Below are positions 12,594 through 35,662 of a stretch of DNA of 37,090 nucleotides, piece by piece. The stretch is from the NCBI RefSeq assembly GCF_001194135.2, contig NC_068992.1:43828924-43866013 (forward strand), in the 5' to 3' direction. How positions within the stretch are numbered: the stretch's first letter is position 1; every line of letters starts with the position of its first letter. A model generated the notes under the pieces. The model saw only the letters and a list, made by a program, of their open reading frames with translations. It was not told where the DNA came from and ran no database searches. The translations under genes and the position numbers were made by a program. The DNA is from Octopus bimaculoides. Taxonomy: Eukaryota.

Positions 12594-12852
12594 CTATTCC
12601 AATTGATGTAATGTTACTCTTGGATCTTCATTTTCACATGGACCTCTAGGGTTTTGCTGTAGAGAGCATAATTTTAATCCAATTTCATTGCCATAAACTG
12701 AATCAGAGTTTTGCACGGCACGACAGATATTCTCTTCAGGAAGGACTTCATAAGCTTCATAAGCTTCATCAGCTTGATCAATTTCATCAATTTCATCAGC
12801 TTGATTGACTTGATGCAACTTTTTAAATTGGTAATCAAGAATCAATATTTTG
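12594..12852 (-). pseudogene. Diverged duplicate of the receptor cytoplasmic-tail exon (acceptor AG->AA, 3' frameshift)
   Basis: Aligns with 15255-15564 (YEVLPEENICRAVQNSDSVYGNEIGLKL versus YETLPEENIRCAVQNSDSVYDKQIGLEL). Homology continues through 12495-12600 / 15160-15260. Confidence 0.7.
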
Positions 12853-14145: not shown

Positions 14146-14976
14146 NNNNNNNNNNNNNNNNNNNNNNNNNNNNNNNNNNNNNNNNNNNNNNNNNNNNNNN
14201 NNNNNNNNNNNNNNNNNNNNNNNNNNNNNNNNNNNNNNNNNNNNNNNNNNNNNNNNNNNNNNNNNNNNNNNNNNNNNNNNNNNNNNNNNNNNNNNNNNNN
14301 NNNNNNNNNNNNNNNNNNNNNNNNNNNNNNNNNNNNNNNNNNNNNNNNNNNNNNNNNNNNNNNNNNNNNNNNNNNNNNNNNNNNNNNNNNNNNNNNNNNN
14401 NNNNNNNNNNNNNNNNNNNNNNNNNNNNNNNNNNNNNNNNNNNNNNNNNNNNNNNNNNNNNNNNNNNNNNNNNNNNNNNNNNNNNNNNNNNNNNNNNNNN
14501 NNNNNNNNNNNNNNNNNNNNNNNNNNNNNNNNNNNNNNNNNNNNNNNNNNNNNNNNNNNNNNNNNNNNNNNNNNNNNNNNNNNNNNNNNNNNNNNNNNNN
14601 NNNNNNNNNNNNNNNNNNNNNNNNNNNNNNNNNNNNNNNNNNNNNNNNNNNNNNNNNNNNNNNNNNNNNNNNNNNNNNNNNNNNNNNNNNNNNNNNNNNN
14701 NNNNNNNNNNNNNNNNNNNNNNNNNNNNNNNNNNNNNNNNNNNNNNNNNNNNNNNNNNNNNNNNNNNNNNNNNNNNNNNNNNNNNNNNNNNNNNNNNNNN
14801 NNNNNNNNNNNNNNNNNNNNNNNNNNNNNNNNNNNNNNNNNNNNNNNNNNNNNNNNNNNNNNNNNNNNNNNNNNNNNNNNNNNNNNNNNNNNNNNNNNNN
14901 NNNNNNNNNNNNNNNNNNNNNNNNNNNNNNNNNNNNNNNNNNNNNNNNNNNNNNNNNNNNNNNNNNNNNNNNNNNN
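14146..14976. other. Assembly gap (N run) flanked by (TA)n
   Basis: Ns. Confidence 1.
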
Positions 14977-15254
14977 ATATATATTTAAGTCACAATACAT
15001 GGATTCAAGTAATCCAGTAGTACTCATAAAAAAAGCACTATTTTGTAGGATTTTTTACATTTTGCATTGATGAAAGCATGTAAGTTATTAGAAGTCTTCT
15101 TATTGCTAAGTAAAATTTCATCAAACTATTTCTCTGTCATTTATGACTGTGTATGTGTGTGTATGTGATTAGTTGTATGCAAAGTTGTTCAATATCAGGA
15201 TTATCAATGAGCTGAGGAGGGGTTTCCACCTATAGCTCTATTTTTTCATCAATG

Positions 15255-15564
15255 TCATCGATTTCCTATGATGTAATACGCTGATCCTGGATTTTCATTT
15301 TCATATGGACCCTCAGGGTTTTGTTGTCGAGAGGATAATTCTAATCCAATTTGTTTGTCATAAACTGAGTCAGAATTTTGCACGGCACACCGGATATTCT
15401 CTTCGGGCAAGGTTTCATAGACTTCATAATCTTGATTGATTTCATCAACTTGATCAGCTTGATTGATTTCATCAACTTGATCAGCTTGATTGACTTGGTT
15501 GACTTGACAGGCTTGATGTGTTGGCATGTAATCTTTACTGCTTTTGTTTTTGAGTATATTATAT
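15255..15564 (-). CDS. Receptor gene terminal coding exon: acidic Tyr-rich cytoplasmic tail
   Basis: Acceptor tctattgcag|A TAT AAT; phase 2 matches the TM exon donor (AG+A=Arg). Reads YNILKNKSSKDYMPT...DYEVYETL...SVYDKQI...PYENENPGSAYYIIGNR*. Confidence 0.8.
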
Positions 15565-15804
15565 CTGCAATAGACAATATATGTGTGTGAGTGTGTGCAC
15601 ACACGTGTGTGTGTATGTATATGTCTGTCTGTCTGTATGTATGTACAATTGGATGAAAACATCTCTCTCTTTCTCTCTCCCCATTTCTCCCTAATTTTTT
15701 TTTGCTCTGTGCACACAAACACCCACTATGTATGCATATATATTTGTATAAGTATGCTTGTGTATGCGCATGCATGCTTGCTTGTGAGTGTATATATATC
15801 ACCA

Positions 15805-15990
15805 TCATCATCATCATCATCATCGTTTAACATCCGCTTTCCATGCTAGCATGAGTTGGACGATTTAACTGAGGACTGGTGAAACCGGATGGCAACACCA
15901 GGCTCCAATCTGATTTGGCAGAGTTCCTACAGCTGGATGCCCTTCCTAACGTCAGCCACTCAGAGAGTGTAGTGGGTGCTTTTACGTGTG
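15805..15990 (-). mobile_element. RTE-type LINE/SINE 3' tail with (ATG)n end
   Basis: The same ~150-bp unit (ggaagggcatccagctgtag...ccaacccatgctagcatggaaa...gttaaacgatgatgatg) recurs at ~22745-22860 (-), ~27680-27825 (+), ~29230-29350 (-) and ~36710-36855 (+). Confidence 0.75.
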
Positions 15991-16151
15991 ACCCGCACGA
16001 GAAAAACAAAAGACAAAGACAGGTGTATAAACAACAAGCAGGTATATTAGTTTGATGCTCGGGAAGGTGAGCAAGTTATTTATATTTTGAGCCTACAGTC
16101 TTCAACAGAAATGAACATGAGGAAATAAATAGAGAGAGAATAACAAAAATA

Positions 16152-16953
16152 NNNNNNNNNNNNNNNNNNNNNNNNNNNNNNNNNNNNNNNNNNNNNNNNN
16201 NNNNNNNNNNNNNNNNNNNNNNNNNNNNNNNNNNNNNNNNNNNNNNNNNNNNNNNNNNNNNNNNNNNNNNNNNNNNNNNNNNNNNNNNNNNNNNNNNNNN
16301 NNNNNNNNNNNNNNNNNNNNNNNNNNNNNNNNNNNNNNNNNNNNNNNNNNNNNNNNNNNNNNNNNNNNNNNNNNNNNNNNNNNNNNNNNNNNNNNNNNNN
16401 NNNNNNNNNNNNNNNNNNNNNNNNNNNNNNNNNNNNNNNNNNNNNNNNNNNNNNNNNNNNNNNNNNNNNNNNNNNNNNNNNNNNNNNNNNNNNNNNNNNN
16501 NNNNNNNNNNNNNNNNNNNNNNNNNNNNNNNNNNNNNNNNNNNNNNNNNNNNNNNNNNNNNNNNNNNNNNNNNNNNNNNNNNNNNNNNNNNNNNNNNNNN
16601 NNNNNNNNNNNNNNNNNNNNNNNNNNNNNNNNNNNNNNNNNNNNNNNNNNNNNNNNNNNNNNNNNNNNNNNNNNNNNNNNNNNNNNNNNNNNNNNNNNNN
16701 NNNNNNNNNNNNNNNNNNNNNNNNNNNNNNNNNNNNNNNNNNNNNNNNNNNNNNNNNNNNNNNNNNNNNNNNNNNNNNNNNNNNNNNNNNNNNNNNNNNN
16801 NNNNNNNNNNNNNNNNNNNNNNNNNNNNNNNNNNNNNNNNNNNNNNNNNNNNNNNNNNNNNNNNNNNNNNNNNNNNNNNNNNNNNNNNNNNNNNNNNNNN
16901 NNNNNNNNNNNNNNNNNNNNNNNNNNNNNNNNNNNNNNNNNNNNNNNNNNNNN
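16152..16953. other. Assembly gap (N run)
   Basis: Ns; lies inside the TM-to-tail intron. Confidence 1.
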
Positions 16954-16996
<43 letters not shown>

Positions 16997-17454
16997 AAAA
17001 GAGACGAAACAGGAAAAACAATGATTATGTTATGAACTTCATTAGCTAACAGCTTTTTCTGCTATAAGATGCAGTGGACTCATAGTTGAGTACCTGAATA
17101 ATATCCTATTGCTTCAACAGGACTTGAATATGAAGTGCAATTTATATGGGAAAAATGAATTACATTTATGCAATATACAGAGAAGTATACCAGTGAGAAA
17201 GTCATTACTGACATATATCAAAAAAGTGTATGTCAAAAAGGCAATTAGATTTGACCCACATTATTCAGCTGTCCCAGAATCTTTAATCATCTCTTTAAAA
17301 ATCTTACAGTCAATTTAATTCCCATGAGTAATAGTTCTGTACTGTTCTGAATATACCAACCAAGACTTTTTGTTTCATTTTCTACACAATCATTGCAACT
17401 TATCATACCTCTTCTTCTACCTTTACATGATAAATATATTCTTTGTACGTCACT

Positions 17455-17915
17455 TTATTATTATTATTATCATTATCATTGGGTGAGAGAGCAATGCATG
17501 TCATCAAAGTGACCCTGGGGTACATCAGGTCTATGCATCACAACCGTATGTGTACAACATGGTGATCTCCTATCAACATAAACAATACATGACCTTGCAG
17601 GTGAGGTCCAGTTAGAATTTTTTTCAGGTTGAGTAGCCCATCCTGCTCAAAAGATCCCCGAATAAGGTTTGTTTAAGGATGAACAAAACACCAATATTTC
17701 CAGACATGAATTATTCAAGCACCAAAGAATTCCCCTCAACACATGGCTATGATGCTCCCCGACTACTTCTGCTCGTTATTAGAGGTGCACATATCGTCAG
17801 CCACAAAGGGAAATGCTCAACTGGTTAAGGTCAAGCAACTGATGAGCAAATCTGTGGTATTGAGCAGAATATTTGCTGTAGTCCATCCTTTATACCAAGG
17901 CAAAACAGTGTACAT
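17455..17915 (-). mobile_element. Interspersed retroposon 3' part with (AAT)n tail
   Basis: (TAT/CAT)n run at 17455-17480 adjoining a GC-richer block that resembles a recurrent octopus repeat (recognition only). Confidence 0.5.
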
Positions 17916-17974
17916 TTTATGATGCACAAAGGAAACGTTGGGTCTATTTTTTGATTATCTGGTTCCTACTCAGC

Positions 17975-18091
17975 ATTAGAGTAATGTGAAATGAAGTGCT
18001 TTGCTCAAAAACACCATACACCACCCAATCTGGGAACTGAACCCATGATCTGACAATCATGAGTGCAACACACTAGCCACTAGGCCATGCC
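17975..18091 (-). mobile_element. tRNA-derived SINE head fragment
   Basis: Reverse complement reads ggcatggcctagtggctag...gggttcagttccc (A- and B-box-like), followed by ttgagcaaagcacttcatttcac. Confidence 0.65.
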
Positions 18092-18279
18092 TGATTGAAA
18101 TCTTGAAAACTACTTTTGAGATATGCTCTGCAACAGCATCCTTTCTGTACACACTGCATATCTTCCTGCAGGTTTCTGCTACCTTTCTTGTCTTGATTTT
18201 TTAAAAATAAAACAGCATGAGGTGTTGATAATATTTGTTTTCAGTCTCCATTTTCAGAGTAATCCTGAGCATGCAAAAT

Positions 18280-18951
18280 ACAACCAGTTTTCTCACAAGT
18301 TCACAGACTGAAGTGAGAGTGCTTGGATAATCTATAACAATGTGAAGCACAAAATATCATGGGAGAAGTGCTGCAAAGCACCACAAATAACCTCCAAAGC
18401 AGGACTGTGCCTAAAGAAGATAATGTTTTCAGTTTGGTGGAACTGGAAAGATGTCATCTTTTACAAGCTACTTCGGACAGACAGGACCATCAATTCTGAT
18501 GTGTACCATAACCAGCTGGACAAATTAAATGCAGTGATCCACCAGAAGCATCCAGCACTTGCTGATCATTAGGGTAATGTCTTTCATTAGGACAATGCCA
18601 GACTGCACACTTTTTTGTGGACATGACAGAATTTACTAGGGATTGGCTGGGTTAGTTTGCTACACCCTCAATATTCACCTGAACTGGTGCCTTCGGATTT
18701 CCACCTGTTTAAGTCTCTTCAAAATTTATTAAATGAACAGACCTTCAACTCTGTGGAGAATGTAAAAAATTGTCACGAAAAGTTTTTATGCCGGTAAAGT
18801 CAAGAAATTCATTGAACAAGGTATAATGGATATTGGAAGATACTGGAACAAAAATATGATTATATCATTGATTGAATAAATCATTTTGTGTTTAAAACTT
18901 GTGCCTAATTTTCGATTAAAAAAACTGAATGGATTTTTGGCCAACCCAATA
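18280..18951 (+). mobile_element. Mariner 3' half, degraded
   Basis: WIIYNNVKHKISW...KKIMFSVWWNWKDVI...DNAR.HT...HPQYSPELVPSDFHLFKSLQN; 3' TIR ...ggatttttggccaacccaata. Confidence 0.85.
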
Positions 18952-19386
18952 TCTATATCTACATATATAATATAATATAATATAATATAAAATATATTTA
19001 TATATTGCTGTCTGGTTTATGCATTGTCGTCCTTTTTCAACTGACTGCCTTTGAGGTCAGTCACATCTGTTCAGTTCTGTCTCGCCACCCGGTCAGTTAA
19101 GATATTTCCTTGCGCTAGCTTACTACACTGCCTGATAGTCGAAAGACTCTGCTTTGTTTTATTTTTGTTGTAATATATAATCATTTTCCGTTTGTTGTAT
19201 AGCCGAAAGGCTTTTGTCCATTGTATATGTATAATTTTATTTCTTATGTTACATTCGTCTGATAGTCGAAAGACCCTTCAGCTTAAGCCTTTGACCCAGT
19301 TGGTTTCAAGTAGTATTGAAGAGGATCAGGCGAAACTATGTGGACATTCTAGACTCCGACTGAAGAAGCAATTGGCTGCAAATGAT

Positions 19387-19396
19387 NNNNNNNNNN
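19387..19396. other. Short assembly gap (10 N) next to (TA)n
   Basis: Ns. Confidence 1.
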
Positions 19397-19442
<46 letters not shown>

Positions 19443-19628
19443 TCCCCCACACATACACACACATGTACACATGCACATACTTTGGTAATGTCCCATTTCC
19501 TGTTCTTTAAACAAACACACACACAGACAAATTCAAACACATATATGCACATACACATATGCCCACACACATACAAACACAAAAGGGAAATAAACTGAGA
19601 ATAAAGATTAATAATATACAAGCTTTAC

Positions 19629-19692
19629 CTTATACAGAGAATGATGATGATGATGATCAAAAATGACGTGAGGACTGCAAAGAGGCCAATAA
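19629..19692 (-). CDS. Receptor gene transmembrane exon
   Basis: ttgttttctcctttag|TT ATT GGC...TGT ATA AG|gtaaag; 64 nt, phase 1-2; encodes VIGLFAVLTSFLIIIIIILCI(R). Confidence 0.85.
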
Positions 19693-20164
19693 CTAAAGGA
19701 GAAAACAATAAGATACTCAATTAACCAATAGTTTATGTAAACTTAAATGGAACCTAATATATGTAACTTAATAATCAAAAACAAAAATATCTTCATTAAA
19801 AATTACTAACGTAATTAAAAGGAAATCTATAACTTTTTGTGATAATTGCTGTCAAAATAAAAATTGATAAAGACTTGAATGGAGACATGCTTTAGGAAGA
19901 GATTCAGGTTATTGCTAAGTATGGAGCTTAACTCTTGGTATGTTTTGTCTTATTAGACTTCTTCGGTAAAGTATAGTGATATCTGTTCTAGATCTCAGAT
20001 TCTTCCTGTTACATGGAACCATTAGAATTTTTAAACAGTTTGTTGAAGTGGTCTTTATTCCTTTTGAAGAAGATTATCATTAATACTAATGATTTTTCTT
20101 TCAATAATGAGTGTAATTTTTAACTCTTAATTTCCTGTACTATGACCCAATACTACAAGTAAAT

Positions 20165-20294
20165 AAACAAATTTTCACATGGTTCCAGATTCAGTCCCAC
20201 TGCATTCCACCTTGGGCAAGTGTCTCTTACAATCGCGTCGCGCCGACCAAAACCTTGTGAGTGGATTTGATAGATGAAAACTGAAAGAAGCCTG

Positions 20295-20297
<3 letters not shown>
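20165..20297 (+). mobile_element. SINE fragment ending in (TA)n
   Basis: ggttccagattcagtccc (B-box-like)...ccttgggcaagtgtc...gaaagaagcctgtcatatata. Confidence 0.55.
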
Positions 20298-20329
<32 letters not shown>

Positions 20330-20965
20330 NNNNNNNNNNNNNNNNNNNNNNNNNNNNNNNNNNNNNNNNNNNNNNNNNNNNNNNNNNNNNNNNNNNNNNN
20401 NNNNNNNNNNNNNNNNNNNNNNNNNNNNNNNNNNNNNNNNNNNNNNNNNNNNNNNNNNNNNNNNNNNNNNNNNNNNNNNNNNNNNNNNNNNNNNNNNNNN
20501 NNNNNNNNNNNNNNNNNNNNNNNNNNNNNNNNNNNNNNNNNNNNNNNNNNNNNNNNNNNNNNNNNNNNNNNNNNNNNNNNNNNNNNNNNNNNNNNNNNNN
20601 NNNNNNNNNNNNNNNNNNNNNNNNNNNNNNNNNNNNNNNNNNNNNNNNNNNNNNNNNNNNNNNNNNNNNNNNNNNNNNNNNNNNNNNNNNNNNNNNNNNN
20701 NNNNNNNNNNNNNNNNNNNNNNNNNNNNNNNNNNNNNNNNNNNNNNNNNNNNNNNNNNNNNNNNNNNNNNNNNNNNNNNNNNNNNNNNNNNNNNNNNNNN
20801 NNNNNNNNNNNNNNNNNNNNNNNNNNNNNNNNNNNNNNNNNNNNNNNNNNNNNNNNNNNNNNNNNNNNNNNNNNNNNNNNNNNNNNNNNNNNNNNNNNNN
20901 NNNNNNNNNNNNNNNNNNNNNNNNNNNNNNNNNNNNNNNNNNNNNNNNNNNNNNNNNNNNNNNNN
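20330..20965. other. Assembly gap (N run) flanked by (TA)n/(TAGA)n
   Basis: Ns; lies inside the stalk-to-TM intron. Confidence 1.
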
Positions 20966-20999
<34 letters not shown>

Positions 21000-21046
21000 T
21001 AGATATATATATAGATAGATATATAGATAGATATATAGATAGATAT

Positions 21047-21095
<49 letters not shown>

Positions 21096-21124
21096 GGTGC
21101 ATGTTTTCTTTGTATCTGTGTACA

Positions 21125-21335
21125 TTCCCAGTCACTGCTTGACAACTGGTGTTGATGTATTTACATCCCCATAACTTAACAGTTCAACAAAAGAGACTGA
21201 TAGAATAAGTACCAGGCTTGAAAAGGATATTAAGTACTGGGGTTGTTTAGTTTGACTAAAATTCTTGAAGGTGGTACCCCAGCATGGCCACAGTCTAATA
21301 ACTGAAACAAGTAAAAGATAAAAGAATTCAATAAT
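21125..21335 (+). mobile_element. SINE 3' part (family also at ~31330-31510 and ~34795-34840)
   Basis: Shared tttacatcccc(g)taacttagcagttc...gatagaataagtacc...ccccagcatggccaca...actgaaacaagta. Confidence 0.7.
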
Positions 21336-21374
21336 AAATCTCTGAGCGAGATATAAACAGTAGCAGCATGACAT

Positions 21375-21767
21375 CGGGAAATATATTTGCCAACTAAAAA
21401 TGTGGCTAAGGCTCCCCCTTAAGGGTCAATGCTACTGTAGCTTGTAGCCACAGGAAGACATCTCATCCAGCTGGCTCGAGATCAGTGACTTTTCGTCACT
21501 GGAAAAAGTATATATATTTGCATTGAGAATCATTTCCCATCACCAACCGGTGGTTGTCATACGCTTATGACAGGTCAATACCCAGAAACTCAGGTCCGTA
21601 TGTATCACGTCAGGCTGGAGATGGGAATGATGACTTCCCTTTGCAAATATTGATAGGGCACAAATAGTGTGTCAATAGCCAGCTAGAGATGTCTTCCTTG
21701 GGCTACAAGCTACAGTAGCATCAACCCTTAAGGGTTAGCCACATTTAGGTGGCAAATCTACTTCACG
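21375..21767. mobile_element. MITE with ~95-bp terminal inverted repeats
   Basis: cgggaaatatatttgccaac...ccttaaggg...gctactgtagcttgtagcc...ggaagacatctc is mirrored by gagatgtcttcc...ggctacaagctacagtagc...cccttaagg...ggcaaatctacttcacg. Confidence 0.85.
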
Positions 21768-22496
21768 TAAAATAATTCATTCGGAAGGAAATGAGAAACT
21801 GCCTAATGTAAGGGAGAAAACTCTAATCCTTTCTCTCCTCCGCTTTTGTTCCTTCACAGAATCATTACAAAGCTGGACTTTGAATTGGACAGTTTTCAGT
21901 ATGATATTAAGAGTTAATTAAATATTTTGGTGTGGGTGTGTTACTACATTAAGTTTGTTAACCTCACTTAGCTCTCTGTCCTTCATTCAAACATTCTTAG
22001 TGCAGTTATTAAACTGCCAAACATCAGCTTAATAAGGACAAATTTATTCAACTGAACTCTTCATTATTTCCAACATTAGTTAAAACAAAGTTAGACTATT
22101 TGAATAGTAACGTGGTTAACAAAAGGTTAAACTCATTCGGATATTCTTGATGCAGTTATTAAATTGTCATTGAATTTAGAGTTGAGTTTTGAGAAAAGAC
22201 CTCTCCCAATCATAAAATCATGTTTGCGAGGCACGAACCAGTTTCTATAGCTATCAAACCATGATATAATATGACACAGATTTTCAATACTTGACATTAA
22301 TTCCAATGATAGAGAATAATTACAGAGTCTCTAACTTCCTAATATCCTCTCAAGGCTTTAGTTAGTTGGCCCAGTGCTATAATGAATGACATCTGCTCTT
22401 GGTATTGTGTAATGGGACTGAAATCAGAACGATGAGGTAGTCAAACTTGATAAACAAAAATTATGAGATGATACATGAAAAAGTAAAAATAATTAC

Positions 22497-22538
22497 CTAT
22501 TTTTATGGAGAGATTTGTTTCATTCCCAAGTATTTTCT
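22497..22538 (-). CDS. Receptor gene stalk mini-exon
   Basis: ttttgtctactttttag|AG AAA ATA...AAA ATA G|gtaatt; 42 nt, phase 1-1; encodes (E)KILGNETNLSIKI with two N-glycosylation sequons (NET, NLS). Confidence 0.8.
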
Positions 22539-22859
22539 CTAAAAAGTAGACAAAATATTAATTAGAAATTGGCAAAAATATCTCTGAAACACTCAAACAC
22601 TATTATTGATCTGAGAAGTCCAATCCTGTTTCATATAAAGATTGTCCATTTCAATCATTGATGCCACCAATTTGGAAGAATCATTCAGTTTGTGATAAAT
22701 TCTTGGAAACAAGAAATAGTTGATGACAACATCAAATAATGAACAGATAGCTAACATCATCATCAGCATCATTTTGGTGTCCACTTTTCCATTCTTGCAT
22801 GGAACAGATGGAATTTATTGAGGCAGATTTTCTATAACTAGATGCTCTTCCAGTCACCA

Positions 22860-23080
22860 ACATACGTGTGTGTATGTGTGTAAGAGTGTGTATACACATA
22901 TATTTACACACAGATGTGTATGTATGTACATATGTAAGTATGTATGTTAGTATGTACATATATATATCTACATATGTGTGTATGTACATATATATCTACA
23001 TATGTGTGTATGTACATATATATCTACATATGCACGTATGTACATATGCATATAAATGTATGTATGTATGTTCAAATGCA
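22860..23080. repeat. (TA/TG/TATG)n compound microsatellite
   Basis: Direct reading. Confidence 0.9.
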
Positions 23081-23084
23081 TGTA

Positions 23085-23965
23085 TGTGGTGGTAGCAAAA
23101 AGTTATTTTTAATAAAAAATAACTTATTTACCTAAGTTTTAACATCATCGCTTTTGAAATGGTCACCCTGCACAGCAATACACTGGTCCCAGCATTCCTG
23201 CCATTTTTGGAATCTGGCCTGGAAGTTGTTTTCCATAAGTGAGTGAAAGATCTTCAATTCACCTTGGATCTTGATAGTGGTGTTAAAACAGTAACCTTTG
23301 AGCTGCATTTTCATCTTGGAGAAAAGATGGAAGGCTGCAGATGCTAAATCTGGTGAATAGGGTATGTGCGTAAGCAATACCATGCTGTTTTTGGTGAGTA
23401 ACTCACAAGTAATGAGAGCTCATGACAGGGTGCATTGTCATCACAAAGAATCCAATTCTTTGCACTCCACAATTCTGGTCACTTTCACCAAATGTCCTCC
23501 CTGAAATGCTTCAAAACATCTTTGATTGTCCTCTGACGATCCTCATGCACAAACTGATGAAATTTCTCCACATTTCCTGGAGTGATGCTTGCAGCAGGTC
23601 TTCAGGATCGCTCATCTTCCAGGGATGTTTTTCTGCTTTTGAAGCTCCTGTGCCACTTGAAGCATTGCATGACCCATTGCCTCATCGCCATAAGTTTACC
23701 AAAGCATGGTCAATGTCTCTGTAGCAGACTTCCGAAGTTTAATGCAAAATTTCAAGCTGGCTCTTTGTTCTTGTCCATCTCAAAATTACAGACAACAGCA
23801 TGCATCTAATCACAAAAACAAAAATTTTCACAACTTGTGAAGTAAAACACAGTAATGATGCGTGACACACCATCCCATGAAGGTCACTTCTAGGTGTTAT
23901 TGCAAACACCCTCATGTACTACCATCTGTTGGTGTACTACAGAACTAGTCTGGCAACTTTTTGAT
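23085..23965 (-). mobile_element. Non-autonomous mariner (same family as 32515-33411)
   Basis: TIR-like gtggtagcaaaaagtt and actagtctggcaactttttgata; PYSPDLASAAFHLFSKMKMQLKG...FQKWQECWDQCIAVQGDHF. Confidence 0.88.
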
Positions 23966-24296
23966 ATGTATGTATTCTATCACCTCAATCCAAAATGTTT
24001 GACTTTGCACAATGTTTTGGACAGGAAATTTCTGATAATTTTGTTTTTGATCCCTGGACATTGACAAAATAACTTCCAGACTGCATTTCCTCAGGAAGAT
24101 ACTTCTGAGTTGGCTTTTCCCTGCATTATGCACCCAACAAGTTTATGCTTGTGTATTTGTGATGAAAATATGTGTGCATATATGTTTATATATGATGAAT
24201 ATATGTGTATGTATGAGTGTCCATTTATACTGATGCTGATATCTGGCATTTAAAATAAACAATGTTTAAGCAAGACAATATCAGACAACCATATAC

Positions 24297-24396
24297 CTTT
24301 TGTTATTCGAGTATATTCTGTCACCAAGTAATTCTGAAATTTTCTTTCTACATTTGTTTTGAATTTATACTCCGAGTAATTACTGATCAAACTTAT
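24297..24396 (-). CDS. Receptor gene exon: second half of module 3
   Basis: atctataatttcag|ATA AGT TTG...ACA AAA G|gtatat; 100 nt, phase 0-1; ISLISNYSEYKFKTNVERKFQNYLVTEYTRITK. Confidence 0.8.
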
Positions 24397-24500
24397 CTGA
24401 AATTATAGATTTGAAATGTCAAATTCACTCTCATAAGACATGCAATGTGCTTGCCTATCAAATTTAAATATTTTAAAATAAGTAAAGAAAATATTTTTAC

Positions 24501-24727
24501 TTCATTGATTCTCAGAAATTTATCCAAAAAGTGGAATTTCAATTTCATGATTTCATTTTTCTCATATGTCTTCAGATTAAAATATTTGATATAAGTATTT
24601 CCATATGGAAATACATAATTCCATTGTAAATTTCTCATGAAAGAAGATAGTGTGTCTTGAATTATTTCCACATCGAAATTTCGTTCATGTTCTTCAGGAG
24701 AAATAACTTTCAACAGCCAATTTTTGC
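24501..24727 (-). CDS. Receptor gene exon: first half of module 3
   Basis: tttattttccag|GC AAA AAT TGG...ATC AAT GAA|gtaaaa; 227 nt, phase 1-0; (S)KNWLLKVISPEEHERNFDVEII...MKLKFHFLDKFLRINE. Confidence 0.8.
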
Positions 24728-24783
24728 CTGGAAAATAAATTTAGAAAATAAGTCTTTTAGTGCGTGTGCTTATGTGTGTATAC

Positions 24784-24814
<31 letters not shown>

Positions 24815-24830
24815 TTTATGTATATACATA

Positions 24831-26002
24831 CAGGGACTTCCTAAAAGTCTATACTCAATTTTCATTTCTTTTTTGATTTAACCCGTTAAAAATAATGATG
24901 TGAGCTAGACTAATCTTTGAACAAAATAAAACTTGTTCTTAGAGCTACTGGAAGTTTAGGAGAGAGTTTTAAAACAGATACACAATACAATTTAACATCA
25001 TTTTGAACCAAATGGAACTGTTCAGAATGTCCACTAGAAATGCTCCCAAAGACTGGACATTGTTGAGTCCCACAAAGCAAGAAAGGACACTAGAATCATA
25101 TCACTAAAGTTCGAGAAAATCTTTGGCAAGCAAGTCATGGGACGTTTGTTTCAAAATCAAGTGTTCATCCATTTTCAAGCACTGTCAGTGGAAAAGTTAC
25201 ATTCCAAGAATAGTCCATGGTCTCAAAGAAGATGACCCAGAGCAAAGAGTGGAGTTTTATGAGTGGCACTTGGTAAGATGTGTAGAAGAGGTATACTTTC
25301 CAACAAAGATTGGAGTGATGAGACTACATTTAAATTAAATGGCCTAATTAACAACCACAACTGCACCTATTAGGGACCTGAGAATTTAAATATTATAGAA
25401 GAATCTCATGTTAATTTACTAGGAGTTACATTATGATGTGGCTTACCAACAAAAGGATTCATTGGACTATTCTTGTTTTTGACAGTATTGCAATTGGTCC
25501 CATTTACTTGAACTTGGTGCAACAATCTGTCATACCAAGCATTCAAGGAGACTTTGAAGACTTTATTTTCTGCTAGCTGAGTCACCCCAACACTTCCATA
25601 GTTATATAAGAGCCTACTGGGATGACATTCTGTCAAACAGGTGGACTGGAAGAGGTAATTCTGTAGAATATCTTCTGCATTCACCAGACATCCCCATGAC
25701 ATTTTTTTATGGGGATACTTAAAAGATAATGTCTACAATACAAAATTAGCAGCTGTTGATAAACTGAGATTAGCCATTGAACAAAATTGTACACAAATAC
25801 CAAATGAAATGTATTTTTGATATGTTGCAATTTCATAGCTCCGAGGTATCAGCAGTGCCTGGGGCAGAATGGTCATCATTTTGAGAACAGGCATTCATAA
25901 AAAAATGAAATATTTGAATTCTATGTATCGTTTTCTTTAAATTTCCTTAATTTCACATTTCCAATGATGCTTTGAATTATTACCAAAGGTTTAGCTCCCT
26001 TG
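24831..26002 (+). mobile_element. Degraded IS630-Tc1-mariner element, rosa/D,D41D-like
   Basis: [12 protein letters not shown], (SD)[26 protein letters not shown]...SPD...FF.WGYLKDNVY, QCLGQNGHHFE; TA flanks. The subfamily label is from motif recall. Confidence 0.7.
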
Positions 26003-26020
26003 TAATAGCTGCACCACATA

Positions 26021-27178
26021 CACTAGCCAAAATAAGTTTCAGAGTGATGATGACAGCTCTATTCCATCATTAATTCATTTTAACAAAACTGTATAAAATT
26101 ATTTTACTTTTTACAGTCTATGTAGAATTTTTTTTCTCTTTCGAATGATATAGGCTTTATATATCTTTCTACAATTTGAATAATTTTAATGCACAAAATA
26201 AGTTTAAGACCATACCAACATTATTTTGTTTCAATTGAAAATTTACAGCAGAAATGATCAATGAACAAAAATTTATTATTAGTATCTAGTTTTATAGCCC
26301 TTATTTTCAATTACAGCCTTACTACGGTGGGACATGGAGTTTGACAGATGAGCACAAAACTCACTTGGAATGCTCTGCCATATTTCTTCAATAAAATTAT
26401 ATAATTGGGAAAAATTTGTTGGTTTTTTAGCATGAATTCCTTTAGCAACATAATTCCATAAGTTTTCTATCAGATTCAAATCTGGGCTCTGCAGAGACCA
26501 CTCAATAACCACCATATTATTGCACTCAAAATATTGCAAAACTTTCCTAGCCTTATGAACAGGGCAATTGTCCTGCTGGAAAATAGATCCCCATGGTTTC
26601 TGATTATTTAAATATGGCAGCACATTTTCATTTACTAATTGCAGCTAACCTATACTGTTCAGTCTGCCATCAACCTTAACAATTGGACAAACACCTTAGT
26701 TATTGAACATGGCCTGCACCATTACCCCATCACTTCTTGCTTGCACGGTTTTCTTGACACATTTAGGATAGAATTCTTCAATTGAACGGCATCTAACATA
26801 AGTCTATCCATCTGATCCAAAGATGCAGAACTGGGCTGGTACTACAATGCTTTCCCATAATGAATAAATATGTAACAATGCTCGATTATTAAGCAAAACA
26901 GTGCAGTATGACCATCCATTTGGCCTATTAATTTATTAATTTGCATAATCTTGGTATGGTCTTAAACTTATTTTGCCAACAATTTCTAATCATTTCATTT
27001 AATTGCACATTAAAATTATTTGAATTGTAGAAAGATATATAACGCCTATATCATTCGAAAGAGAAACAAACTCTACATAAACTATAAAAAGTAAAATAAT
27101 TTTATACAGCTTTGTTAAAAATACATCAATGAAGGAATAGAATTGTCATCATAGGTCTTAAACATATTTTGGCCAGTG
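26021..27178 (-). mobile_element. Tc1-like (DD34E) element of IR-DR type, internally deleted, with TA target duplication
   Basis: TA at 26019-20 and 27179-80. ~200-240-bp inverted repeats carry caaaata(a/t)gttt(aagacc) direct repeats at both ends. ORF 26279-26623 reads FQQDNCPVH...SPDLNLIENLW with 34 residues between D and E. Confidence 0.92.
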
Positions 27179-27211
27179 TATGTTCGATTTAGTTGTTCAA
27201 TGAAATCTTAC

Positions 27212-27305
27212 TTTTCTGTAGTTTACATGAATATTTAGCTGGGATTGTCTTATGTATGCTGACACAACCGTATTCTTCTTCAGTAAGTATTTTTGTCAAG
27301 ACAAT
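27212..27305 (-). CDS. Receptor gene exon: second half of module 2
   Basis: ttttatgatttttcag|ATT GTC TTG...CAG AAA A|gtaaga; 94 nt, phase 0-1; IVLTKILTEEEYGCVSIHKTIPAKYSCKLQK. Confidence 0.88.
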
Positions 27306-28102
27306 CTGAAAAATCATAAAAGAAAATTTCAAGCTGATTAGTTTTAATATATATTTAAATTAACACAAATGTCTACATTGATAGAAGAGCAGTTTTTGAC
27401 TTTATGAGTCTGGTCCATTCATTTTATTTGCGTGAGAGAGAGAAGGACTTTTGTTATTATACATACACATATACATATACACATGCATACACATTCAGGA
27501 ACATACACACATGTAGACGCATGCTCACACACATACATAAACAAACACAAACACACTCAAACACATATACACACTGACACCTACACAAAATAATTACTCC
27601 AGTTAATGAGGGAAGCCTCTATGTGATTAGTTGACTGTCTAGAAATAAATGCCAAATCTCCTTTAAATTACATTGGTTGGTTGGTGCTACGAAGGGTATC
27701 CAGCTGCAGAAACCATGCCAAATCAGACTATAGTTAGGTGCAGCCCTACAGCTTACCAGCCATGGTCAAACCAACCAACCCATGCCAGCATGGATAATGG
27801 ACGTTAAATGATGATGATGATGATGTACTGTATTAGAAAAGAAGGACACACTGAATAAAGGTCATGAGTGCATGTATCTGAAAAATGAACATGGTGGTCA
27901 TAGATGAATGTATTTGAATCTAGGTCCACTGAATCAAGACTGATCAGGGCTTTAACAATAACAATGACAGAAAATAAATAAATCTTTAATAGCATAGAGA
28001 ATTCAAGGTAAAAATTCTTACTTTGAATATGTCAAAATATTTGCTACCGTTTTCTTAAAATAAAAAAGCAAACACGGAATTCAAGAAGGTGAAAATTCTT
28101 AC

Positions 28103-28335
28103 TTTGGATATGTCAAAAGATTTGCTACTGTCTTTAAAGTATATTTCAGCCTCACCAATGCCTATTTTACCTATATTAGTAAAAGCAGAGAATGTCGGGA
28201 GATAAGCTAACTTTTTGAATGTTAGACTTTGTGAAGAATTTGTTCCACTGCCAGTCACTCCAACAAATATCTTTATTTCTTCTATATTTTTAATTAGTTT
28301 GGATAGAGAGCTTAGTTCTATTTTCCACTCAAGAT
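28103..28335 (-). CDS. Receptor gene exon: first half of module 2
   Basis: ttcttctttcttatttag|AT CTT GAG TGG...ATA TCC AAA|gtaaga; 233 nt, phase 1-0; (D)LEWKIELSS...IKIFVGVTGSG...TNIGKIGIGEAEIYFKDSSKSFDISK. Confidence 0.88.
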
Positions 28336-29620
28336 CTAAATAAGAAAGAAGAAAATGAAAAGAGCAATGAAAAAATTATATCGTAGCTGTGATACATTAA
28401 CAAAAGAAATGTGCTGCAAGAAAAATGATGAATTATATGACATTTTGAGATTTGAGTTATTCATCAGTAGAAAACAACTGATTTTCTTATCATTAATCTT
28501 TTCTTATCATTAATCATAATTCTGTTGAAATATGTTTGATTTCATTTAATTTTGACAATAATAAAGAATTTGTTAAGTAACTTTGTTGTTATTAAGCTGA
28601 TGTTTGGAATATAAATTAACATGGAATTTTAATGAAAGGTTGTCATTAAGATCAGTTTAAAACAAGGAATTTGTATCATAGAACTAGGGTTTGTTTCAGG
28701 CTGGTTGGTATAAAAAGGATTAAGAAATAAAGGAACGGTTGTTGTAACATTTAAAGTTGAGTTATGTTTAATAAGTTGAATAATTAATAAAAGAAAGAAT
28801 TATCATCAACAATGTTTACTAATGAGACTAAACATTTTTAATATAGAATTTGTTGTATGTAAGTTATGTATGTGAATCAAGAAATAGTGAAACTGTCAAA
28901 AGATAACGGCAGGAATACCTCATAAATCAAATCATAGTTGCCTGTTACAATAAGAATAATCACTTGGAGAGACAAAGTTGAGGGATGAAAATTATCATTA
29001 AAAAGATAATTTTCATTGAGTATCTAAAGACACAAGGCTTCTATAAAGAGCTGAATTCCAAGATTTTTAAAAGCCTGCCAAAACATTTTTAGAATGTTCC
29101 ATGTTGCCCTTAGGAGCAAAATGTTATTCTTCTTGTCTGACATTGGCCTCTCACAAACAAATTTCAAAAATAACTGTTTGGAAAAATATTTGTATGTATT
29201 ATAATAGACTTCAGAGATGAAACTAAAATAGTTCTGGTCATGGTGACAGGAAGAGCATCCATCCATGAAAATCTGATTAATGAATTCTCTTCTGATTCAT
29301 GCAAGCATGGCAAAGTGAACATCAAAATGCTGTTGCCACTACCATCACCATCGATGACTAATTGGATATATGACAGAATCTCAATGTAGAGCTGTGGAAT
29401 ATTGTTTAGTTTTACATCTTTGAGTTGGAATCTGGTTTTGGTGTTGGGAAGATTAACTCTTGATGGTAAATCAACACAGTAGCATGAATCATTTAGAATT
29501 CACCCTGCTCACTCTCTTTCTTTATCATTTAACATCTTGTAAAAGCCACACAGACAGCAAGGTAGAACTACTTCATAGTTTCTAATAAAGTGACATAATA
29601 AATACCTTCTATCAACTTAC

Positions 29621-29714
29621 CGTTTCTCAATGAACACTCATGGTAAGGATTACTTTGTTTAAGAAGATAACTACAGGAATATATTTTGGAAGTTTCCATG
29701 TTCTTCAGTTTGAT
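29621..29714 (-). CDS. Receptor gene exon: second half of module 1
   Basis: tttttttcttttacttaag|ATC AAA CTG...AGA AAC G|gtaagt; 94 nt, phase 0-1; IKLKNMETSKIYSCSYLLKQSNPYHECSLRN. Confidence 0.9.
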
Positions 29715-30663
29715 CTTAAGTAAAAGAAAAAAACAACAAAATTATGTTTATGTCTCTAGGAATTATATAGATTTAGACAGGTGTCGTTTTGTTCTGGATC
29801 CAGCAATTAAACAGATGAGAAATAATTAACTTATCCATCCACTCAGCAATTCTATCTCTACAAATTTTGATAGCTTTATAAATAGTCAAACAAGACCATG
29901 TTTTCAGCAGCTGAGCAATTATATTGAATCAACAGATGATGATAGCAGAGAAGCAACCTGGGCTTGTCATCTTAGTATATTCATCTTGAAAATATTATTC
30001 TATTCTAAATCATAAATTCATGTAGAACTGAATGTAGAAATAGAGAAAACATTAAGTGACAGTTAGGTAAAGAGAAGAAAGAAGAAATGTTGACTGTTAG
30101 GAAGGATGGGGTCATTGTAGGTGGGATAGAGAACAGATAGTTCCAGTATCGCCTTTCATGACACAGAATAAACAGCAAAAAGGATAAATGGTAAACTTGG
30201 GCCTGGCATGAAGTGAACACAGAACAGTGATGTTAAGTCATTCATCCAAACTACCTGCTTTCTAAAACAGGAAAAATGATCATCAATGCACAGCAGTACG
30301 TTTTACTGAACTATGCGTGGGCATACATGTATGTAACTTGTTTTATTTGCTCAAATCCAGTAACCCTAAAAACAAGTTATAAATTGGTTTCAAATTTTGG
30401 AACAAGGTGAGTAAGTTTATGGGAGAGGGGATAAGTTGATTACATTGAACCCCAGTGTTTAAATAGTATTTATGACCCTGAAAGAATGATAGACAGAATT
30501 TGTATTCTGAATCTAAAGATGGGTGAAATGCCACTAAACAGCTAATGATTCTACCAGCCTGTCACGTTGAAAACAAGTAGTATATTGAAGTTGAGTCAAA
30601 CAATTATACTCCTTTCTAATTGAATAACTAAATAATTTAATAATTAATATAGGGTTTACTCAC

Positions 30664-30869
30664 AGTCTTGTCCAGCCAAAATTTTTTTGTTGTCAATAAT
30701 TCTATTCTTGACTTTGTATTCATTTCCATTGGAAGAAAGAATGATACATTTGTTGTTTTAGAATTTGCTCTAAACTTTATAAAGTTTTTACCATAAGGCT
30801 TTATTTCAAAAGACTCATCATAATTGTCATACAACTTACTGTGTATAACTGCCATGTTCCAGTGTACCC
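30664..30869 (-). CDS. Receptor gene exon: first half of module 1
   Basis: ttttttctcttactttctag|GG GTA CAC TGG...AAG ACT|gtgagt; 206 nt, phase 1-0; VHWNMAVIHSK...FEIKPYGKN...KKFWLDKT. Confidence 0.9.
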
Positions 30870-31888: not shown

Positions 31889-32495
31889 ATGAGGTGGTAT
31901 CAAAAAGTTCTTGGACTAGCTTTGTAGTGCACCAATAGATGCCAGTACATGTTTGTGTGCACAGTGAGAGCTAGCAGTGACCTTCATGAGGCAGTGTGTT
32001 GAGTAATATCGGTGTGTTTACTTTGCAAGTTGTGAAATTTGTGTTTTTATGGTCACTTGTATGCTGTAGTGTGTGATTTTGTCATGGATAGAAACAAAGA
32101 GCCAACAAGAAATTTATGTTAAACTTGAGAAGTCTATTATAGTCCCTGAAAGATGGTGTGCGATCTGGAAAATCTGCCATGTGTGTCATCCCCTGAAATA
32201 TGGTATTGTGCATCAAGAGTTCATTCCCCCAGGGTTAGACCTTCAATTGAGAGTTCTACTGTGGCATTTTGAAATGTTTGAGGGAAGACATTCATTGAAA
32301 GCAACTGGATCTGTGGAGCACAAAGAATTGGATTCTTCACAACAACAATCTCTCTTCACTCGTGAGTTTCTTGCTAAAAACAACAACATATTGCTTTGAA
32401 ACCTACCCTATTCACCAGATTTAGCACCTACAGATTTCCATCTCTTCCTCAAGATGAAACTGCAGCTCAAAGGTCACCGTTTTAACATTATGATT
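31889..32495 (+). mobile_element. Mariner deletion derivative, 3'-truncated
   Basis: 5' TIR gaggtggtatcaaaaagttc; GIVHQEFIPPG, WILHNNN, LPYSPDLAPTDFHLFLKMKLQLKG. Confidence 0.85.
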
Positions 32496-32514
32496 TGAAG
32501 GGATAGAATACATA

Positions 32515-33411
32515 TGTATAAAAAAGTTCCCAGACTAGCTCTGTAGTCTGCTAAGAGATAGCAGCACATGTTTGTGTGTGCAGTGACACCTAGAAGCGAC
32601 CTTCATGGGATGGTGTACCAAGTGACATCACTGTGTTTACTTTGCACGCTGTGCAATTTTTGTTTTTGTGATTATGTGTATACTGTAGTCTGTGATTTTG
32701 TCATGGAGAGAAACAAAGAGCCAACATGAAATTTAGCATTAAACTTGGGAAGTCTGCCTCGGAAACATTGAGCATGCTTTGGTAAACTTATGGTAATGAG
32801 GTAATAGGTCATACATGTTTTGAGTGGTATAGGTGCTTCAAAAGCAGAACATCCCTAGAAGACAAGCAACCTGGAAGACCTGCCATGAACATCTCCCCTG
32901 GAAATGTGGAAGAAAATTCATCAGCTTGTACATGAGGATCGTCAGAGGACAACCAATAACATTTTGAAGCATTTGAGGGAGGACATTTGGCAAAAGTGAC
33001 TGGACTTGTGAAGTACAAAGAAATGGATTCTACATGATGACAATGCACCCTGCCATCGAGCTCTCCTCGCTTGTGAGTTTGTCGCTAAAAACAGCAAGGT
33101 ATTGCTTCCATATCTGCCATATTCACTAGATTTAGCATCTGCAGCCTTCAATCTCTTCCCCAAGATGAAAATGCAGCTCAAAGGTTACTGTTTTAGCACC
33201 ATTATCAAGATCCACTGTAAATCGCAGAAGGTGCTTGACTCACTTATGGAAAACAACTTCCAGGCCAGATTCCAAAAATGGCAGGAATGCTGGGACCAGT
33301 CTGTTGCTGCACAAGGTGACCATTTCAAAGGTGATGATGTTTAAAAATAGGTAAATAAGTTATTTTTTATCAAATATAATTAGTGCTGGAACTTTTTGAT
33401 ACCACCTTGTA
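32515..33411 (+). mobile_element. Non-autonomous mariner with both ends
   Basis: Starts taaaaagttcccagactag and ends aactttttgataccaccttgta; HTH remnant (FEWYRCFK..RTSLED..PGRP), DDNAP and PYSLDLASAAFNLFPKMKMQLKG. Confidence 0.88.
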
Positions 33412-35662
33412 TAATGACAAATTATATGATAGACATGAAAATGGTTGATGTCTTACGACAGGTCTTCCAAAATTTTATTAAACTGTAACCCCTTTCCTTT
33501 GATCAATCCCCTTTGCTATGATTCAGTGCTCCCTTGCTAAGATTTAACACTACCACCCTATTTTTAATGTACATATACTTAATATAAAGCCAGACTAATT
33601 AAGCTCCAAGTAGATTTATGGTCGAAGATGATGAACTTTTAGTACATCACTTCAGTCACACTTGGGTTCTTATTCATTGTGTCACATATATACTGATGTA
33701 GCTACCAGTTGAAATTTGTCTGCATATTCTCAATTCTAGTAGTAGTTTCTATATATTCACAAACTCATATGCTGTTTTCCCAGCAACATGCAAGTTTACA
33801 TATGTCTAGTTATAAATGTGAATAAATTATGGGATTAACAAACAGCCATCATAGCTAGAACCAACAACATTCTAGTAAACAGATAGGTATGAAAATGTGT
33901 GCATATAAGTCAGGGCATTACATAATGCTACAAGTGCAGTAGCATGTATGGAAATATTCAAAATTTTGACAGTGTCTTTTAAACTGATTTTAAGGTTACT
34001 GTATATAATTTTCATGCCATAGACGGTATATAATCAGTTTTTTTAAATTATTCATTTAATTTCATAGTCTACTTTTATTGTTTATTTGTTCTTGTTATTG
34101 TCATCATTACGACTGTGAATAACAAGCACTTTCTAATAATTACATATCTAAAATTATTTTAAAGTTTAATATTCAAATATGAAACAAAGACTAAAAATCT
34201 ATAAAAATGTATCTATTGCTCCTTCTTATTGTCCCCTTGCCCCAGTGGCCATATAAATTTTCACACACTTCAAGGTCAGTATCACCTACTTTGTGAAAAA
34301 CTGCCTCATTGTATTGAAACACAGGTGGTGAATGCAGAAGATTTTTAAAGAGTAGAATGCTAACATTTACTCAGAAATGTTTCCATTAAACAGGAATTTC
34401 TTGTGCAACATTTACAATAATTTTATTATTATATATCATTATATATATAATAAAAAAGATTGGAAATAAAAATAAAGCATATAGGAAGGATAAATTGTGC
34501 AGGAATATGAAAGTATTAAATTAACTGGACAGTCAAAATGATAATGTCTACAGATTAATCTGTTCTTAAGGACATTCTTCTTATATAGAGAAAATAGTTA
34601 TAAATAATTTTAACCATTGTAATTTATAGATTTAAAGAACAAAACTTTTGTCAACTGGTTAATCAGGCTGGAGTAAGCTTTTCTATGCTGATCATGTCTG
34701 ACGGATTGAAATATGTTCATAGTTATCCTTTGCTTCAATTTTGAATCCTGCTCCTGTATCATGTAAATTAACTCTGAGTATTTCATTTTTCATTTTATCT
34801 AGTTTCAGCTCATGAGCTGTGGCCATGCTGGGGCACCGCCAGTCTAATTGTTTGAAATTATTTCCCCTGTTCTTTGAATCTTACTAAAAATTACTACAGA
34901 ATTTTGTTTCTATCTTTAGTTTAGAGTGAAATTTTCTCTTAATTTAGAATTTTTGTATATAGAATTCAGTATGTCATCTTCATAATTTATTTTATATAAA
35001 TCCATGCCATGGGTCCATTTGAGTTATCAACCTTAGCTCATATTTTTTATTTAACTATACAAAATATACCAGCCTAAATTTGCTTGTAACTATTTTTTAC
35101 ATGTAAAAAACATTGTAACTTGGAGTAACTAAACTATACTGATGTCTAATGAGGTGTAACAGACAGAAACATACTCATAGTTGCACCTCCTGCCTGCAAA
35201 TTACTTTGAAAAATTAATTCTAAATTTTTTTAAATTATCTCCTCTTTTCCTTGAGAGTTGCCAACAATTGCAACTAGATTTTTATTTTCTTTCCCTACAT
35301 AAAAAGGAAATTTCAATTAATTAAGAATCTTTTGTATGCATCAACCCTTAGATTATACTATTTTTTTAACTCAGAACAATGTTACTGCTTTAGCCGTTTT
35401 AGAAAATATTATTTTTATATCCATTTTCATGCATCAACACTGTTTGGAAAAGTTGTTGAAAATTTCACTAATGACATGATTGACTGGAGATATTGATTTT
35501 ACAGCTGTTTGTCGTTCTTATTACTGACTACACAACCGTGGATTGAACCACTAAATGTAGAATAATGTGTCTTTCCTAGGGATTGAATAGCAACAATAAA
35601 ATTTGAACTGATAATACTGATCATTGTTGTTGAGCATATTAATCTTATAATTATTATGCTTC

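Follow-up and report, generated by a model that had tools for sequence, protein, structure and literature searches.

A gene of an octopod-restricted family probably encoding type I surface glycoproteins with PLAT-like modules in Octopus bimaculoides

Introduction

What does the minus strand encode between positions 30869 and 15255 of a 37,090-nucleotide (nt) stretch of the Octopus bimaculoides genome (contig NC_068992.1, positions 43,828,924 to 43,866,013; the window)? A sequence-only reading had recognized a hidden nine-exon gene there, coding for a single-pass receptor with three PLAT-like ectodomain modules and a tyrosine-motif tail. The gene proved not to be hidden, being already annotated in RefSeq as LOC106873066 with isoforms X1 and X2, and this annotation carries no function, domain or publication. 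Taken as a whole, its product is probably best explained as a type I surface glycoprotein with four PLAT-like modules, belonging to a family restricted to octopods.

Exon structure and identity of the gene

The exons were recovered by enumerating open minus-strand segments bounded by AG and GT and then reading each junction. The nine-exon chain was obtained exactly as it had been read, with a total length of 1370 nt (455 codons plus a stop) and no internal stop. A pyrimidine-rich AG lies ahead of all nine exons (e1 to e9), a GT donor (GTAAG, GTGAG, GTATA or GTAAT) follows each of e1 to e8, the phases chain from exon to exon, and the codons split across junctions read D, S, E, V and R. A further upstream coding exon, e0, was located by tblastn with XP_014775780 and XP_014775771 and by reading its AG and GT. 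The coding exons in the window are, in the order of transcription:

35895-35808, minus strand: e0, upstream coding exon, 88 nt, phase 0-1
30869-30664, minus strand: e1, first half of module 1, 206 nt, phase 1-0; AG and GT kept in Octopus sinensis
29714-29621, minus strand: e2, second half of module 1, 94 nt, phase 0-1; holds the conserved Cys-x12-Cys pair
28335-28103, minus strand: e3, first half of module 2, 233 nt, phase 1-0
27305-27212, minus strand: e4, second half of module 2, 94 nt, phase 0-1; contains EEYGC...YSC
24727-24501, minus strand: e5, first half of module 3, 227 nt, phase 1-0; the O. sinensis exon has 3 nt more, in frame
24396-24297, minus strand: e6, second half of module 3, 100 nt, phase 0-1; no cysteine pair
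22538-22497, minus strand: e7, stalk exon, 42 nt, phase 1-1; sequons NET and NLS
19692-19629, minus strand: e8, transmembrane exon by hydropathy and predicted helix, 64 nt, phase 1-2
15564-15255, minus strand: e9, cytoplasmic tail of 103 amino acids (aa) and stop, 310 nt, phase 2-stop; 3' untranslated region (UTR) to at least 15100

Exons e1 to e9 are real spliced coding exons of a gene. Their 455 aa match, without any difference, residues 115-569 of XP_014775771.1, the 569-aa isoform X1 of O. bimaculoides LOC106873066, described as "uncharacterized", and a protein search returned isoform X2 (XP_014775780.1) at 100% identity, in a cluster that also contains X1. LOC106873066 lies on the minus strand of chromosome CM046612.1, where the window again occupies 43,828,924-43,866,013; it spans 33.3 kb and has 12 coding exons, of which e1 to e9 are exons 4-12. 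As a full gene the nine exons fall short by three 5' coding exons, e0 in the window and two past position 37090. The outermost of these carries the signal peptide and ends in phase 1, while the next is of phase 1-0 and encodes residues ~20-84. RefSeq thereby adds 114 aa to the nine-exon model, made up of the signal peptide and a fourth, N-terminal module.

RNA contigs, compared over 15100-16151, cover e9 and the 3'UTR (15100-15566) in four runs. Two of them (511 and 1604 nt) stop precisely at the acceptor of e9, their lengths allowing 408 and 1501 nt further upstream. The junctions other than the e9 acceptor rest on the RefSeq models and on the comparison with O. sinensis.

The XP_0147 accession series and a 'PREDICTED' EukProt entry suggest that the annotation dates from the first (2015) round. 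A literature search on the LOC, XP and UniProt identifiers and on PLAT domains in octopus returned nothing relevant. In UniRef, the X2 entry (A0A0L8ID31) is named 'Vitellogenin domain-containing protein', whereas X1, with the same residues 1-445, is named 'Uncharacterized'. The vitellogenin label has no Pfam support and is probably a spurious product of automatic naming.

The orthologous locus of O. sinensis is free of N and contains the same exons in the same order. All ten exons shared between the species keep their AG and GT and their length, apart from the in-frame addition in e5. At the nucleotide level e0 is 91% identical to its O. sinensis counterpart, and e8, at 95.9%, is among the best conserved exons. 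The sequence-only reading had named two checks on the gene, the ratio of nonsynonymous to synonymous substitution rates (dN/dS) between species and a search of the orthologous exons for stops or lost splice sites. By the Nei-Gojobori method, the ectodomain has a dN/dS of 0.41 (dS 0.14) between O. bimaculoides and O. sinensis, and both the frame and the splice sites are intact. The ratio rises from 0.18 in module 3, the membrane-proximal module, through 0.40 and 0.57 to 0.93 in e0, the most distal exon tested, although the counts behind this gradient are small. The tail stands at 0.55. These substitution ratios point to purifying selection on a coding gene, with a weaker constraint towards the N-terminus.

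Architecture and predicted topology

The full protein of 569 aa comprises a signal peptide, four modules of ~100-110 aa (0 to 3), a stalk, a transmembrane helix and a 103-aa tail; the count of three modules in the sequence-only reading therefore rises to four. Each module is encoded by a phase 1-0 exon followed by a phase 0-1 exon and has a conserved tryptophan at its start. The product of e0, AFVQNHYLQEMYVAKCQANCSTAHPELKK followed by the first base of a tryptophan codon, forms the second half of the N-terminal fourth module. Modules 0-2 each contain an even number of cysteines and module 3 contains none. The Cys-x12-Cys pairs of modules 1 and 2 lie in their second-half exons and vary little or not at all across the family, C82 and C95 of e2 being invariant.

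The protein begins with MLLLSFSSMLVFILLHFTNTHA, encoded outside the window, with a hydropathy peak at residues 1-20. The sole internal peak lies at 439-456 (starts of 19-residue windows) and is followed by the basic RYNILKNKSSK. It corresponds to the 21-residue helix of e8, VIGLFAVLTSFLIIIIIILCI, which reaches a Kyte-Doolittle hydropathy of 3.2 and is predicted helical. The ectodomain before it carries 7 N-glycosylation sequons and 8 cysteines, and the e9 tail of 103 aa has 8 tyrosines and 18 acidic against 8 basic residues. An AlphaFold2 model built on the 18-sequence family alignment shows three all-β modules of eight strands each (predicted local distance difference test score, pLDDT, ~70-86), a helix at 324-361 and a disordered tail (pLDDT below 50). 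The elements of a single-pass type I membrane protein that had been read from the exons, namely the sequon-bearing stalk (NET, NLS), the 21-residue helix and the acidic tail with its 8 tyrosines, are thus all present, and they support the prediction of a single-pass type I membrane glycoprotein.

Fold of the modules

The description of the modules as PLAT-like held for the predicted fold, by AlphaFold2 and Foldseek, and had no backing from any sequence model, whether from Pfam or from PDB profiles. Modelled alone, module 2 was predicted by AlphaFold2 with eight strands at a pLDDT of 76. Among the top 50 Foldseek matches of this model in the PDB, 49 were PLAT domains, from lipoxygenases, pancreatic lipases, lipoprotein lipase (LPL) and Rab6IP1. 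These PLAT matches had probabilities of ~1.0, template modelling (TM) scores of 0.41-0.60 (most of them 0.46-0.60), E values of 2e-3 to 4e-2 and root-mean-square deviations (rmsd) of 4-6 Å. No Ig, FN3 or CUB domain appeared in the top 50, and the single C2 match was weak (probability 0.66, TM score 0.28). The whole-protein model gave high-probability local matches in the PDB to the same PLAT families.

Several results weigh against this assignment. The Pfam PLAT model (PF01477) had no match at E <= 10 in the protein or in any of 18 family members, the only Pfam matches being spurious ones to the transmembrane segment, and a PDB sequence-profile search with module 2 found no match. Aligned by hhalign with a lipoxygenase PLAT profile, the modules gave E values of 0.06-0.3, although this profile, with its 3 sequences, is too thin to speak against a remote homology. 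The alignments of module against module were likewise weak (E 0.016-0.29), and their register agreed with the exon structure for modules 1 and 2 only. The structural models themselves derive from a shallow alignment of 15-18 sequences and are of moderate confidence, with TM scores of ~0.5-0.6. The models support the modules as PLAT-like in their predicted fold, and in that respect only; there is no support for counting them in the PF01477 sequence family.

It is possible, if unlikely, that the modules represent a new or convergent eight-stranded β-sandwich without PLAT/LH2 kin, and that generic topology or errors in the model account for the Foldseek matches. The missing Pfam, PDB-sequence and profile matches would fit such a sandwich, as would the limited TM scores and large rmsd, the shallow alignment and the pLDDT of module 2. 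The extracellular, disulfide-bonded setting would also be unusual for PLAT domains, which are mostly known as intracellular or enzyme-attached membrane-targeting modules. Against such a sandwich stand the top matches, which are PLAT domains with one exception and come from four unrelated protein classes, the lack of Ig, FN3 or CUB domains beside the lone weak C2 match, and the independent return of the same families from the whole-protein model.

If the modules are read as PLAT-like, the proteins to compare are those with PLAT/LH2 domains of PF01477: animal lipoxygenases (N-terminal), pancreatic lipase and lipoprotein lipase (C-terminal), Rab6IP1, polycystin-1 and LOXHD1. The octopus modules share with them a predicted eight-stranded β-sandwich of ~110 aa. 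They differ in having no detectable sequence similarity to these proteins, in their predicted extracellular position with paired cysteines and sequons, and in being joined to a single-pass anchor instead of a catalytic or channel domain. LOXHD1 also consists of tandem modules, but the octopus protein has no sequence match to it and adds a signal peptide and a transmembrane helix; LOXHD1 is itself a cytoplasmic protein, and the PLAT domain of polycystin also lies in the cytoplasm. An extracellular PLAT/LH2 module is found in the apicomplexan LCCL/LAP (CCp) adhesive proteins. These too place a PLAT-type module outside the cell in a multi-module adhesive protein, but they belong to unrelated organisms, are mosaics with other domains, are not known to have a transmembrane segment followed by a tyrosine tail and have no known relation in sequence to the octopus protein.

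Family and distribution

Clustered at 50% identity, the family comprised 18 clusters in a word-indexed search and 30 in an exhaustive hidden Markov model search of 1.84 billion representatives. All named matches came from O. bimaculoides, O. sinensis, O. vulgaris or Argonauta hians. The 1.84 billion representatives yielded no relative outside Octopoda, and nothing new came from a second profile to which the Argonauta sequences had been added. The earlier suggestion that the architecture matched no described family and might be lineage-specific is borne out in that the protein has no described relatives and its relatives come from Octopus and Argonauta only.

At least eight O. bimaculoides genes belong to the family. 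LOC106873066 is arranged tail to tail with its paralogue LOC106873081, with ~24 kb between the 3' ends. The same chromosome holds, at a distance of 17.6 Mb, a tandem pair made up of LOC106873229 and LOC106873224, and other members lie on other chromosomes. From these searches and positions, the family appears to consist of small gene clusters found only in octopods. Its members vary in their parts: some paralogues have several 14-aa stalk repeats of the e7 type, with three or four in LOC106880587 and LOC106880589, and several family products end before the tail or have none. LOC106873081 (CM046612.1 43,784,207-43,820,158, plus strand) contains an extra internal duplication of a unit of the e0 plus e1 type, evidence that modules have been gained through the duplication of exons.

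The predicted cytoplasmic tail and a putative soluble isoform

The tails of the paralogues and of the Argonauta proteins have an acidic Y-x-N motif (DIYENL, DIYANT, GPYENS, DIYQNL) and, 12-20 residues further on, a C-terminal [VIL]YE[ED][LF]; some of them also contain repeats of DIEQLYTQPIKY. We take the Y-x-N and YE[ED][LF] motifs to resemble docking sites of the Grb2-type or Src-type SH2 domain, or YxxPhi sorting signals, a likeness of form from which a function does not follow. The tail of LOC106873066 has no immunoreceptor tyrosine-based activation motif (ITAM; YxxL/I-x6-12-YxxL/I), as YxxL/I occurs only at Y468, Y516 and Y563, more than 40 residues apart. Two stretches fit the consensus of the corresponding inhibitory motif (ITIM; [SIVL]xYxx[IVL]): IRYNIL, two residues from the transmembrane helix and conserved, and the C-terminal SAYYII, absent in O. 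sinensis.

For this particular gene, the comparison with O. sinensis weakens the case for a signalling tail. The tail of O. sinensis X1 has 3 tyrosines instead of 8, reads GPCENE in place of GPYENE, contains no AYYII and ends in RATLH, so that most of the tyrosine motifs behind the earlier proposal of a signalling receptor are missing from the orthologue. The C-terminal SAYYII of O. bimaculoides e9 arises from a 2-nt insertion or deletion specific to the proximal of two copies of the tail exon (see below). In both species, moreover, the distal DIEQLYTQPIKY or DIEQLY motif of the family is kept only as an out-of-frame relic in the 3'UTR. In O. bimaculoides this relic, PPQLIDNPDIEQLCIQLITY (minus strand, 3'UTR, 15140-15229; also 12496-12555), resembles the C-terminal DNPDIEQLYTQPIKY of LOC106873224 and the Argonauta repeats. 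The tail of LOC106873066 would thus be evolving fast and be partly decayed, and the relics suggest that an ancestral, longer tail was shortened by a stop or a frameshift before O. bimaculoides and O. sinensis split.

The second copy of the tail exon is found 2.4 kb past the stop codon:

12485-12815, minus strand: second tail-exon copy, 5'-truncated (3' part only, no acceptor), 78% identical to e9

Its open frame ends in ...GPCENEDPRVTLHQLE and a stop, and it shares 87-90% identity with the tail exon of O. sinensis and the flank downstream of that exon. A three-way DNA alignment shows e9 of the two species to be orthologous over its first ~60 nt. From the QADQ repeat on, the O. sinensis exon is 90% identical to 12485-12815 and only ~74% to e9, and by this alignment the O. 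sinensis C-terminus has its true orthologue in the downstream copy. Within O. bimaculoides the copies are 22% different from each other, more than the 10-13% between orthologous flanks. Either the duplication may be older than the species split, with later loss of the proximal copy in O. sinensis, or the proximal copy may have evolved faster. The QADQ repeat is a tandem duplication within e9 (15428-15500, minus strand), in which QADQVDEIN occurs twice at 27 nt per unit. Together with the adjacent DYEVYE it accounts for 36 nt that neither O. sinensis nor the second copy has, and it breaks the RNA contigs at 15460-15464.

Isoform X2 differs from X1 in skipping the 64-nt e8. As a result e9 is read in a shifted frame rich in lysine and isoleucine, open for 74 codons up to a stop at 15343-15341. 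The annotation of O. sinensis, like that of O. bimaculoides, includes an X2-type isoform. If X2 is translated, skipping of the transmembrane exon would yield a soluble form without a membrane anchor.

These observations bear on whether the protein might be mainly a secreted or adhesive glycoprotein without a signalling role, its modules binding lipids, lipoproteins or matrix, its transmembrane helix serving as an anchor only, and its tail holding YxxPhi sorting signals or nothing functional. We regard this as a less probable reading. The isoform lacking the transmembrane helix, annotated in two species, would suit it, as would the family products that end before or without a tail; the tyrosine motifs of LOC106873066 are not conserved in the orthologue, and the dN/dS of the tail is the 0.55 given above. 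It would also be in line with the PLAT domains of secreted lipases, which bind partners or lipid surfaces. Against it, the transmembrane exon is among the best conserved and keeps its splice sites, the acidic YxN and YE[ED][LF] motifs are found again in the tails of paralogues and of the Argonauta proteins, and the tail of X2 is the product of a frameshift in a putative protein.

Assembly gaps and repeats

The window is AT-rich (GC 36%) and contains five runs of N, at 10731-11641, 14146-14976, 16152-16953, 19387-19396 and 20330-20965. Three of these lie within the span of e1 to e9:

20330-20965: assembly gap, in the intron between e7 and e8
19387-19396: assembly gap of 10 N, in the intron between e8 and e9
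16152-16953: assembly gap, in the intron between e8 and e9

None of the three touches an exon. As all of them are intronic, it is splicing that makes the frame continuous, and the unread letters have no part in it. The chromosome-scale assembly still contains these gaps.

The sequence-only reading had allowed for extra exons in the gaps at 16152-16953 and 20330-20965. It is very improbable that the gaps hide further coding exons, such as extra 42-nt stalk exons, and that the true product differs from the model. What gives the idea some ground is that the paralogues with three or four stalk repeats, LOC106880587 and LOC106880589, have them between their equivalents of e7 and e8, and that the gap at 20330-20965 sits in exactly this intron. 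The flanks of this gap, however, are collinear with the gap-free O. sinensis locus (positions 34140-34359 and 34757-34848 there), where the matching interval is only ~400 nt long. The O. sinensis orthologue has one stalk exon, with the same exons in the same order throughout, and its X1 protein is collinear with the model; RefSeq X1 on the chromosome assembly also equals the model. For the gap at 16152-16953 the comparison covers exon order only. For the 10-N gap, the aligned O. sinensis blocks lie at a good distance from the gap, on both sides of an O. bimaculoides-specific insertion of ~700 nt. A tblastn search of the window with all family proteins found no exons beyond those already known except the second tail copy.

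Four of the five N runs (all but 10731-11641), whose flanks were translated, are bordered by TA-rich or TATC-type microsatellites that read YIYIYI in translation. These microsatellites probably caused the assembly breaks. A short interspersed repeat occurs in three copies, at 15784-16040, 27688-27825 and 36710-36852, which are 76-79% identical. Its k-mer depth in the RNA contigs is 10^4 to 10^5, against ~10-40 for the gene. An Rfam search of the whole window, this repeat included, gave no match. Two transposase fragments, at 26282-26644 (minus strand) and 18342-18572 (plus strand), match one DDE_3 (Tc1-like, E 6e-7) and one mariner Transposase_1 family (E 6e-19). Mariner-like stretches at 23135-23419 and ~32000-33200, in introns and upstream, had no Pfam match. 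One mariner-derived open frame, 23314-23167, was considered as an exon and rejected: it is absent from the annotated product and resembles, by eye, the C-terminal fragment of a transposase, with no Pfam family.

With transposon fragments and microsatellites so abundant in the region, a pseudogene, or open frames that chain together by chance in intronic DNA full of repeats, might come to mind, but this is refuted by a 455-codon frame that stays open in such AT-rich DNA and is identical to the RefSeq product, by RNA contigs that stop at the e9 acceptor in a manner consistent with splicing, and by an orthologue with intact frame and splice sites and a dN/dS below 1.

Discussion

We return to the reading of LOC106873066 as a type I surface glycoprotein with PLAT-like modules. 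By analogy with PLAT domains elsewhere, the modules may bind an extracellular partner, which could be a protein or a lipidic surface. Inside the cell, the motifs of the family's tails, acidic Y-x-N and C-terminal [VIL]-Y-E-[ED]-[LF], might function as phosphotyrosine sites that dock SH2 domains of the Grb2 or Src type, or else as YxxPhi sorting signals. The architecture and these family-wide motifs make a role in recognition or signalling plausible, though less so for LOC106873066 itself, given the decay of its tail. An immune or sensory role is pure conjecture.

In its layout the protein recalls the KIR/LILR-type receptors of the Ig superfamily, which have ITIM or ITAM tails and soluble splice forms. 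Both consist of a signal peptide, tandem β-sandwich modules, a stalk, a transmembrane helix and a tail with tyrosine motifs, and the likeness extends to module units symmetric in phase 1, a skippable transmembrane exon, small gene clusters and faster-evolving membrane-distal modules. The octopus modules, however, are not Ig-like, and the tail has no canonical ITAM. The likeness is one of architecture, and any link to immunity would be speculative. Along these lines we can only tentatively imagine the family as octopod-restricted recognition receptors, in which PLAT-like units take the binding role instead of Ig, FN3 or leucine-rich repeat (LRR) domains, the acidic YxN and YE[ED][LF] motifs act as phosphotyrosine motifs, and skipping of the transmembrane exon switches to a soluble form. 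We hold this reading to be doubtful; if it were right, the family would be a new class of invertebrate immune or contact-chemosensory receptor with an origin inside Octopoda.

Cephalopod novelties are often put down to lineage-specific gene families, most of which have no structural or functional assignment. For one family found only in octopods, there is now a concrete predicted architecture, in which a signal peptide is followed by four PLAT-like modules, a stalk, a transmembrane helix and a tyrosine tail, and in which splicing would switch between membrane and soluble forms. If this is true, a single-pass receptor with a tandem extracellular array of PLAT-like modules would be an unusual use of the fold, and the family would offer a testable candidate for octopus-specific recognition, be it immune, adhesive or chemotactile.

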